Shown here in pieces: positions 45,401 through 48,400 of a DNA stretch of 64,000 bases. Source of the DNA: Podarcis melisellensis (taxonomy: Eukaryota); NCBI GenBank assembly GCA_964234715.1, contig OZ174280.1; one strand, 5' to 3'. Every line of letters begins with the position of its first letter. The stretch's first letter is position 1. Both the position numbers and the translations under genes were made by a program. The notes below the pieces were generated by a model that saw only the letters and a list, made by a program, of their open reading frames with translations, was not told the origin of the DNA and did not search any database.

Positions 45401-48400
45401 ACAAGAGTGATAATGGTTGGTGTGTAGATAGACCAGGGGATAAAAGATGAAAAGAGCATCGCCTCCTTGGTTCAGTCAGGTTTGCAATTTGATTTTCAAG
45501 TGTAAACCAGGAGCACTTGTCACCTCCTAATCTGGTGAGAAGGCTGCATTTCCCCCCCTATCTATGCCATTACTGAAAGGTACTGCTTTTCAATTGATGG
45601 TGTTCTAGGATGCACACTGTTGGCTTGTGCTGTTTTAAATCTTACTTTACTCCTAAAAACACATCACTGAATGTTGGTCACAAACAAATTAGAGGGATGT
45701 GCATTCAAGATAATATATTTACCATCAAGCCACCTATATGTAAGCCGTATATTGTATCTAGACGTAATTCCTATCTTTTAAATCTGCTGGTAAACAAGGG
45801 CAGTGTTGAAAGCTACCTCTTGTTTAAACTATAGCATTACTCAAAGTTATTTTAAGCCCCAAACACATAGCAGTTCTCAATTGAGTCCTGTGTTCCTTCC
45901 ATTGGAGACTATCTAAATGGCTTAGCATGGACATTCAGGTCATATTTCATTTGACTTTTGAGAATGAGGCTTGCAGGTTTTTGCATGACTAGATATCACC
46001 AGGGAAGAGTATTCATGCAAAGTTCTTAAAATAAGAGGGAACTTTGGATTATACGGTTTGTGTTAAGGCTCTTCTTTGCTGTTGAATGTCTTGGGTTTTT
46101 GTGCTGTTTTTGTTTTGTTCCCATTGTTTCTTTTTATAAGGCTTATATAAGACTTAATTTCAGTTGATTGCTTGGCTTCTATAACTGGATTTTTACTTAA
46201 TTTAGCCTTGGAACAGTCATTTTCTTCTTTTTTTATCTGCTCAGCATTTTAGTTGCATTTCCATTGCCTACTAAACAGGTTCGTACCCATGGCTCTCCTC
46301 AAGGACTCATTTTTGGGTCTCTCTCTTACTATTAGGTTTCAGTTAGTGATATGGATGACAGCACCAGTTCAGATTTGATAGGGGAGTTCACATGCATCAC
46401 TGCAAAGCTGTTGGAAGCGAGAGACCAAGCGGTGAGCAGCAGTCATTCTCTCTTATAAAGTTCTGCTTGTCCATTGCCTGCTGTTTCTTTCCTTTCAGGT
46501 GCACTGTTCAGATTATGATAGTGATGGGTCACATGACTTGATAGGCATTTTTGAAACTAACCTCTCCCAGCTACAGAAGGCAGGTGGCAGCTCTCCGGTG
46601 AGCTTTTACTTTTACCTTCTTTTATTAACTAATTGAACCTATTTCTCATTGCAAAGAAGAATCATAGAAACAATAAATTGATTCTCACAGAGCTACAATT
46701 CCCAGCACCCTTTAAAGTTCCTAGGAAGCAATAGATGTTGTATTTTAAGTCATCTGTGTTCAGCAACCCAAGATATCTAATTTCTGCTTCCTGGTTTACC
46801 GCAAGGGGGAAAAGAAGCCAGGTTTGCTATCGCAACGAACTGGTTGCTGCTTTTTGGAGTTTTTAGGCAGCTCGCAGGCAACAAGTGCCCCAGAGAAGGT
46901 CCTGGGGACGACCAGGACATTGAGGGTTCCCGCAGAGGTCAAAAGCGAGCTCCCAACGGGTCTGCATGGTTCCATTTGGTGTCGGGCTGACCCGGCGGTC
47001 AAGCTGTGATCACTTGCCAGTATGCATGGCTACCATTATTTTTTCTACCTTGGGTCTTGTCCTGTGTATCTTAAAATGTGAACTATGTGGTTTCATTTCA
47101 TTAACTAGAACAAGTTCCTTTGATGTGTGTTGCTTTCTTTGTAGGTGGAATTTGAGTGTATTCACCCTGAGAAGAAGAGAAAGAAGAAGAGCTATAAAAA
47201 CTCGGGCATTGTTCGAGTCAAGTCTTGCAAAGTAAGGAGCATTTCATACAGAAGAGTTTGCTATTCTGTGATTGTAGCGTAGAAGTTGTAACAGTTGTCT
47301 GCTGTTTTTTTTCAGATTGAAATGGAATATTCTTTCCTGGATTACATCATGGGAGGCTGCCAAATTAATTTCACTGTGAGTTGGGTCACCTGTTTACATG
47401 CCTTTTCCACCTAAGTTAAAACAACTCAAGCATTTATATATTCCTGTGAAAAAGCCATTGCACTTAAACTGCACAAAAACCAGTTTACTAGATCTGTCAG
47501 TGAATAAGTCTGCTGCTTGTATATCTGCCAGAATAAACAAAATGAATTCACTGATCTTTCTAATACATAGTCTCCCTGGTTGCATTTTGGGGGAACCTAA
47601 TGTTTGACCTTTCTTCAGCTGCCTTGAGTTTTTTAGTGATTATTTCAGCAGCATTCTTCACTGGTGTTAGGTATGCTTGAAGTCAACTTCCATGAATGTT
47701 GGGCTTTCTTTGGTTGCCTGTTTCTAGAAAGAAATCTTATCTTTGTGTTCTTTGTTATTGTGTCAGGTGGGTGTAGATTTCACCGGCTCCAATGGAGATC
47801 CAAAGTCACCAGATTCTCTTCACTATATCAGTCCAAATGGGATAAATGAATACCTGACCGCCATCTGGTGTGTGGGGAACGTGGTACAGGATTATGACAC
47901 GTATGTTAAAACTATTTTTAGCTGCTCTAGTTTCGAGCGTTAGTAATAAGTGAAATTTAATAGAGTTAAAAGTGATGTATTTGACTGAGTAACTTCAGTC
48001 CCTTCAACCTTTATGTATTATGCATCTCCTGCATCTCAGGTTATTGCTGAATTGCAGAAGATTGTTCTTTGTTTTGTTGGTTCCTTCATGAGAGTAAGTG
48101 ATTGCTTTGCTTTTCTGCTTGCTTATAAAATGACACTGCTGAGTCTCAGTACTTGAGAGCAAGAGCTGTAGACAGTCATGTATAAATGAAAATGATCACT
48201 GCTCATGGGATGAGTGTGCATTTTTTCCTGGCATTTTAAACTGAAGGAGGAGTCAACTCAATTACAACCTTGGCTCCTGGAAGCCTCGCTCCCCTGCACT
48301 CTTACTGCTTGCTTCGCTTTTAGCAGTTTTGGTTTCTGATGTAGCATGCAGTTTCTGCCAGCTTGCAGCAGTGGTAACTATGAATTGTTTTTGTTCAGTT

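Follow-up and report, generated by a model that had tools for sequence, protein, structure and literature searches.

In the lizard Podarcis melisellensis, a 64,000-nucleotide (nt) stretch of contig OZ174280.1 (assembly GCA_964234715.1; hereafter the window) carries the copine gene CPNE1 with two versions, 7a and 7b, of the exon that lies between coding exons 6 and 8. These two exons are very likely an ancient tandem duplicate that is used mutually exclusively and swaps the C2B segment containing calcium-binding loop 3. The window sequence was searched exon by exon, and full-length comparisons were made with natural database proteins from other species. The features concerned are as follows, with the evidence for each.

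43542–43631, +: CPNE1 coding exon 6; 90 nt, 30 codons, phase 0, C-terminal ...NKPMK (translation, RNA junctions, tblastn with the Podarcis muralis copine model)
44057–44110, +: optional cassette exon; 54 nt, in-frame TGA at codon 8 (RNA junctions in run X13, translation)
46336–46431, +: exon 7a; 96 nt, 32 codons (RNA junctions to exons 6 and 8 in four runs, fish and amphibian orthologues, structure model)
46432–46498, +: spacer intron between 7a and 7b; 67 nt (sequence, an unspliced contig, a short spacer in other vertebrates)
46499–46597, +: exon 7b, the canonical version; 99 nt, 33 codons (RNA junctions to exons 6 and 8)
47145–47231, +: CPNE1 coding exon 8; 87 nt, 29 codons, lysine-rich end of C2B (junctions 46431>47145 and 46597>47145)
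47316–47375, +: CPNE1 coding exon 9; 60 nt (junction 47231>47316 in all four runs)

The coordinates, lengths and translations that the original prediction gave for 7a and 7b agree exactly with the window sequence and its translations. Each exon is also preceded, as predicted, by a pyrimidine-rich tract and AG, and followed by a G/GTGAGC donor (the slash marking the exon boundary). The acceptors read ...tctcttactattag/G for 7a and ...ctttcctttcag/G for 7b, and the donors GCG/gtgagc and CCG/gtgagc, respectively. Exon 6 has 30 codons and exon 8 has 29; accordingly, 7a and 7b are in phase 0, and each is a multiple of three in length.

The two exons are adjacent, homologous, nearly equal in length (96 and 99 nt) and of the same phase, as expected for tandem duplicates. 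Identical residues occupy 12 of the 32 aligned positions, and 8 of these 12 are encoded by different codons, both as previously counted; at the nucleotide level the identity is 37/96. The peptide alignment scores 5.9 standard deviations above 2000 shuffles, and in tblastn searches of the 64-kb window the sole non-self match of each peptide is the other exon (E 0.03), supporting the proposed tandem duplication. No third copy was found in the window by these searches. Pfam returned no match for either peptide alone, since 32 and 33 residues are too short.

A 10-mer, TCCATTGCCT, occurs on the plus strand at both 46260–46269 and 46470–46479, 66 nt before the 7a acceptor and 19 nt before the 7b acceptor. 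CCATTGC is also kept in the spacer of a further locus, L006, and in those of bird loci. The shared 10-mer may be due to chance or may be a common splicing element.

Exon 7a was present, at 0.71–1.00 of sampled words, in 20 public runs covering 10 coded organisms and 8 studies. Four runs from three related organisms were aligned to positions 43450–47420: one raw-read RNA run (X24) and three contig sets labelled "RNA?" (X13, X1 and X4), which are clearly transcript-derived since they skip 2.7 kb at splice sites. Support for the junctions around the exon pair was as follows.

Exon 6 to 7a (43631>46336): 2 reads in X24; depth 64.4 in X13, 12.2 in X1, 21.2 in X4
Exon 7a to 8 (46431>47145): 6 reads in X24; depth 73.6 in X13, 14.2 in X1, 21.2 in X4
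Exon 6 to 7b (43631>46499): 1 read in X24; depth 36.8 in X13, 17 in X1, 20.6 in X4
Exon 7b to 8 (46597>47145): 0 reads in X24; depth 51.2 in X13, 26.3 in X1, 20.6 in X4

All four junctions are GT..AG; the complete set is present in the contigs of three runs, and three of the four are also seen in the X24 raw reads. In the RNA, 7a and 7b thus share exon 6 as their upstream neighbour and exon 8 as their downstream one. Neither a 7a-to-7b (46431>46499) nor a 6-to-8 (43631>47145) junction is listed in the four runs, where contigs and low read numbers could miss rare forms. The RNA thus contains every junction expected of mutually exclusive use, as the original prediction proposed, and neither of the two that would depart from it is listed. 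Judged by junction depths and reads, use of 7a is comparable to or above that of 7b in three of the four runs. Relative to the window, each of the four runs has differences at three positions in exons 8 and 9 but none within 7a.

It is very improbable that 7a and 7b are combined in one mRNA to give a copine with a duplicated C2B segment. The summed length of the two exons keeps the frame, and ab initio GenBank models from Pangasianodon, Bagarius, Prochilodus, Coregonus and Gymnothorax do string 7a and 7b together, for example in a protein of 566 amino acids. However, the 46431>46499 junction that this arrangement requires occurs in 0/4 runs, evidence-based RefSeq isoforms hold either exon and never both, and the one transcript with both exons, L001, retains the spacer and is frameshifted. 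The spacer, at 45–83 nt and just 45 nt in frog, also argues against it. The tandem fish models (P0010, P0011, P0015, P0021 and P0025, all GenBank ab initio models from five fishes) are probably annotation errors caused by the in-frame exon pair. In UniProt, such CPNE1 orthologues often go under the name "Copine-3".

The spacer length is similarly restricted in every source in which it was measured. It is 67 nt in the window, 63 nt in L006, 66 and 64 nt in birds, 45 nt in frog, 53 nt in gar, 59 nt in sturgeon, and 57, 72 and 75 nt in teleost open reading frames (ORFs). In the teleost transcript L001 it is 83 nt, is retained and shifts the downstream frame, which completes a range of 45–83 nt across the 10 other sources. 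Simultaneous occupancy of a donor and a branch point has a steric limit of ~50 nt (PMC5740500, PMC7969005). Candidate branch adenines in the window spacer lie at +24, +26–28 and +42 from the 7a donor, all within this limit, and the geometry is thus compatible with a steric block.

Steric hindrance is the most likely source of the exclusivity. A branch point for 7b less than ~50 nt from the 7a donor could not be occupied at the same time as that donor, and because any usable branch point would fall within this distance, splicing of 7a to 7b would be impossible. Reading frame and nonsense-mediated decay (NMD) cannot police precise double inclusion, because both exons are multiples of three. Were both exons recognised at once, the spacer would stay in the mRNA and introduce an early stop. 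Each mRNA would otherwise contain exon 6, then 7a or 7b, then exon 8, and the outcome would be two full-length copine-1 proteins with 32 or 33 residues at this site, otherwise alike. RNA structure was rejected as an alternative mechanism, the fold of 46240–46640 being no stabler than shuffles (z −0.10).

Transcripts with premature stops are present beside the 7a and 7b forms. In X13, an unspliced contig across the spacer (46405–46526) has a depth of 27.6, compared with ~7 in the remaining intron, and retention of the 67-nt spacer in mRNA produces a stop after 8 codons. The 54-nt cassette at 44057–44110 is joined to exon 6 (43631>44057, depth 50.2) and to 7a (44110>46336, depth 51.2), both in X13 only. 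This cassette may act as a poison exon whose use is linked to the choice of 7a.

Exon 7a is widespread among bony vertebrates. A phmmer search with the 7a peptide against 1.84 billion representatives gave nine matches, of which two were repeats and seven were real; the seven are read-through ORFs or one transcript containing 7a, a short spacer and 7b. Region-restricted searches recovered full-length copine-1 models (isoforms X2 or X3) in which a 7a-type exon is followed directly by exon 8, in ~30 teleost clusters spanning cyprinids, loaches, catfish, characins, milkfish, herrings, salmonids, eels and bony-tongues. Isoforms that differ only at exon 7 share one 90%-identity cluster, and cluster members were therefore listed to find further examples. 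These include isoforms of salamanders (Pleurodeles, Lissotriton) and frogs (Hyperolius, Engystomops, Leptodactylus, Anomaloglossus, Ranitomeya), as well as annotated isoforms of gar and sturgeon. An apparent lack of tetrapod 7a in searches seeded with fish 7a was an artefact of this clustering, the tetrapod isoforms sitting inside the clusters.

In Danio rerio (XP_005169315.1, isoform X2), Pleurodeles waltl (XP_069099959.1, X2), Lepisosteus oculatus (XP_006639778) and Acipenser ruthenus (X2), the orthologous exon has 32 codons and the same flanking exons. The fish and amphibian 7a isoforms share the signature D-x-D-[DE]-x-[ST]-S-S-D-x-I-G-E and are one residue shorter than the corresponding 7b isoform. 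They are automatic models. In lizards, the models found (four Podarcis muralis UniProt entries) are 7b-type only. Lizard 7b is identical to those Podarcis muralis models.

Apart from the 7a-type isoforms, the retrieved CPNE1 and CPNE3 proteins carry 7b, the canonical type. The retrieved marsupial proteins have 7b only, in line with the earlier identification of 7b as the canonical mammalian type.

Sequence comparison places the duplication deep in vertebrate history. Lizard and newt 7a are identical at 28/32 residues, and in a tree of 18 7a and 23 7b peptides the two types split with 100/100 support, with the CPNE3 exon on the 7b side. Because 7a occurs in both ray-finned fishes and tetrapods and the tree separates the types, the duplication predates the split between these groups. 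The ratio of nonsynonymous to synonymous substitution (dN/dS) for 7a is 0.25 between lizard and L006, 0.12 between lizard and frog, 0.21 between gar and sturgeon and 0.035 between gar and teleost, similar to the values for 7b. The proposal of an old duplication kept under protein-level selection is upheld by the fish and amphibian orthologues, the 100/100 split and these 7a ratios of 0.035–0.25. Purifying selection acts on both copies across species except in birds, where 7a has 97 nt and a dN/dS of ~1.

Between lizard and bird, synonymous divergence (dS) is unusually low in both exons (0.06–0.41, from small numbers), and the spacer is ~78% identical between lizard and duck. These values hint at constraint on the RNA itself, for example on splicing signals.

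Several lineages have lost 7a or its reading frame. In the tammar wallaby, the 286 nt between exon 6 and 7b contain no trace of 7a, and none was found in the ~85–88 nt between these exons in two percomorph fishes. A link between loss of 7a and endothermy, as in birds and mammals, was dropped, given that the two percomorphs also lack the exon.

The bird homologue of 7a has 97 nt and keeps AG and GTGAGCAG, with both splice sites and a 64–66-nt spacer intact. It was found in the duck locus (Anas platyrhynchos KB742967.1, L008:6848-6944), in four duck-like contigs (L002–L005) and in a bird-like one (L007:926-1022). L002–L005 and L007 had also been considered as lizard relatives, which was ruled out: 7b in these contigs matches that of duck and rhea, and the same 97-nt exon is present in the duck locus. 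The additional nucleotide shifts the frame and would lead to a stop four codons into exon 8, and dN/dS between the two bird types compared is ~1.2. By its sequence, bird 7a no longer behaves as coding; it may persist as a silent relic or serve as a regulatory exon that induces a stop. A frameshift in orthologous 7a, which the original prediction had named as counting against itself, is therefore found in birds but not in the lizard lineage; in the window and in L006 the exon is open at 96 nt.

The bird exon raises the question of whether lizard 7a is likewise non-productive or decaying, that is, a regulated poison exon or a relic that yields no second protein. The predicted stop four codons into exon 8 and the dN/dS of ~1.2 in birds lend some weight to this view, as does the lizard RNA that retains the spacer or adds the 54-nt stop-containing exon before 7a. 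We nevertheless consider it improbable for the lizard, where the exon is open at 96 nt in the window and L006 and joins exon 8 in frame, dN/dS is 0.12–0.25, 28/32 residues match a newt exon that belongs to a coding RefSeq isoform, and 7a junction depths equal or exceed those of 7b in 3/4 runs. A productive, mutually exclusive pair accounts better for these observations.

The swapped segment lies in calcium-binding region 3 of C2B, as originally assigned; alignments of 7b, AlphaFold models and a fold match all agree on this. By sequence, 7b aligns to the C2B domain of the plant copine BON1 and to loop 3 of synaptotagmin-1 C2A, at E-values (0.0025–0.5) that are weak. Models of the newt orthologue, rather than of the lizard protein, were built with AlphaFold from natural C2B sequences, using for each model an alignment restricted to the matching exon type. 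In both, the exon 7 region spans the last part of one C2B strand, then calcium-binding loop 3, the strand after it and a short helix. The predicted local distance difference test (pLDDT) score is 82.1 with 7a and 87.8 with 7b, the order of strands and helix is the same, and the 7a loop is modelled at lower confidence than the 7b loop. The motif runs from the end of a strand (86–94) through the loop (95–99) into the following strand (100–109). The best Foldseek match of the 7a model is BON1 C2B (6kxt; E 2.5e-7, template modelling score 0.65–0.69), followed by type-II C2 domains including those of cPLA2, PLC-delta and dysferlin.

Both exons keep the aspartates D5, D7 and D13 and the D-L-I-G.F motif, as had been noted. 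The pattern D-x-D-(5 residues)-D followed by [LIVM]-[IV]-G is present in both and invariant across 27 7a-type and 28 7b-type sequences. Within this frame the loops differ: D-M-D-D-S-T-S-S-D in 7a of the window versus D-Y-D-S-D-G-S-H-D in 7b, and type-wide D-x-D-[DE]-x-[ST]-S-S-D versus D-[YH]-D-[SN]-D-G-S-H-D. The strand and helix after the loop also differ consistently between the types.

C2B is reported to be critical when copines associate with membranes in a Ca2+-dependent manner (PMC10968396). Because the loop differs in this domain, a difference in Ca2+ or lipid sensing is a reasonable proposal, and the 7a and 7b proteins may differ in their Ca2+ affinity, in the lipids they prefer or in their partners. 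A second possibility, which we regard as less likely than not, is that the switch is truly exclusive but alters a surface for protein binding or intramolecular contacts, built from the strand and helix after the loop, rather than Ca2+/lipid sensing. Neither type shows variation in the three Ca2+-coordinating aspartates, the residues outside the loop that best distinguish the types fall in that strand and helix (G-E-F-T-C...K-L-L-E-A in 7a, G-x-F-x-T-N...Q-L-Q-K-A in 7b), and copine C2 domains mediate protein interactions too (PMC10968396). On the other hand, the loop itself differs consistently, with an acidic residue right after the second aspartate in 7a and S-S replacing G-S-H, and the reported role of C2B in Ca2+-dependent membrane association speaks for an effect on sensing.

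Several points weigh against an ancient, mutually exclusive pair that swaps the C2B loop. The exon is dispensable in several lineages, since it is lost in a marsupial and two percomorphs and frame-broken in birds. The RNA runs come from relatives of the window's species, and from animals other than the window's individual. Absence of a 7a-to-7b or 6-to-8 junction is not proof, because assembled contigs, which drop rare forms, make up three of the four runs, and the raw-read run X24 gives just 9 junction reads over the exon pair. Given that the runs carry no tissue labels, regulated switching is a possibility at most. For the mechanism, the branch point is represented by candidate adenines, and the 83-nt fish spacer of L001 could in principle exceed the steric limit. 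The 7a isoform itself is known from sequence and RNA.

More speculatively, the choice of 7a or 7b might be regulated, and might for over 400 million years have switched copine-1 between two calcium sensors with different Ca2+/lipid thresholds. This switch would be gone in mammals, and the 97-nt leftover of birds would adjust CPNE1 output by inducing a stop. We offer this fuller scenario tentatively, as possible rather than probable.

Tandem mutually exclusive pairs with a size-restricted spacer are already well known as a kind. Exons 2 and 3 of alpha-tropomyosin are a mutually exclusive pair governed by steric hindrance. They resemble 7a and 7b in being adjacent and homologous and in not being joined to each other, which in pairs of this type requires a downstream branch point less than ~50 nt from the upstream donor; for 7a and 7b such a position is probable. 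The whole copine-1 intron is 45–83 nt, whereas the tropomyosin intron is longer, with a distant branch point; and both copine-1 exons are multiples of three, so that NMD gives no backup against precise double inclusion.

Exons 4a and 4b of OGDH, which are mutually exclusive throughout the vertebrates, are likewise kept together by a size-restricted intron, and they have a measured difference in Ca2+ sensitivity (PMC7969005). OGDH is another protein with another fold, and its Ca2+ difference is measured, whereas that of copine-1 is inferred. Amniotes have retained both OGDH exons; in copine-1, by contrast, 7a is missing or disrupted in the marsupial, birds and percomorph fishes. In dysferlin, alternative exons give two versions of one C2 fold, C2A and C2A variant 1 (PDB 4ihb and 4iqh, both among the fold matches of the 7a model). 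Dysferlin, however, swaps its first exon via alternative promoters rather than using an internal tandem pair, and its exons are not homologous to the copine pair.

The prediction had been cautious about the novelty of 7a, and the answer is divided. The exon is already contained in RefSeq and UniProt models of fish and amphibian copine-1 isoforms, whereas no paper describing it was found in the literature searched, which covered copines and CPNE1 in combination with mutually exclusive, tandem-duplicated, homologous or alternative exons. The main text of a human survey of mutually exclusive exons does not mention CPNE. A Xenopus study reports six cpne1 isoforms in tissue-specific ratios. A 2024 review calls it unclear how alternative splicing affects what copines do, and lists just deletions and N-terminal variants (PMC10968396).

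The mammalian proteins retrieved here have a 7b-type C2B only. Of the bony vertebrates sampled outside mammals, most carry another, strongly conserved version of the loop through which C2 domains bind Ca2+ and membrane. Copine-1 biology has been worked out almost wholly in mammals. The two exons provide a natural variant pair for asking what sets the Ca2+/lipid threshold of a copine, and knock-downs, antibodies and rescue constructs for cpne1 in zebrafish or Xenopus must specify the isoform targeted. The conserved 45–83-nt spacer is also a clean vertebrate example of a size-restricted intron enforcing exclusive splicing.

The identity of the gene as CPNE1 is supported by its surroundings in the window. 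Pfam matched C2 and Copine domains on the exons neighbouring 7a and 7b. The Podarcis muralis copine model aligned to the window by tblastn in 13 collinear segments at 64–100% identity, the minimum being where a segment crosses an intron. Upstream of the CPNE1 coding exons lies a single-exon RBM12-like ORF with four RRM matches (Pfam; 8620–11124, +), next to a run of N at 8440–8618. In gar, an RBM12-like gene is likewise found at the 5′ end of cpne1 (L010:383-3064), and because of this shared arrangement the RBM12–CPNE1 overlap is old.

An exon of C2B at ~41875–41943 (+), of the ...NLDKK type, has an open frame in the window; the Podarcis muralis UniProt model P0170 has unrelated residues there and is likely mis-built at this exon. 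The introns at ~44500–44550 and 46642–46774 contain short interspersed repeats to which numerous unrelated reads and contigs align, leaving loose ends on either side; these repeats lie outside CPNE1 transcripts.

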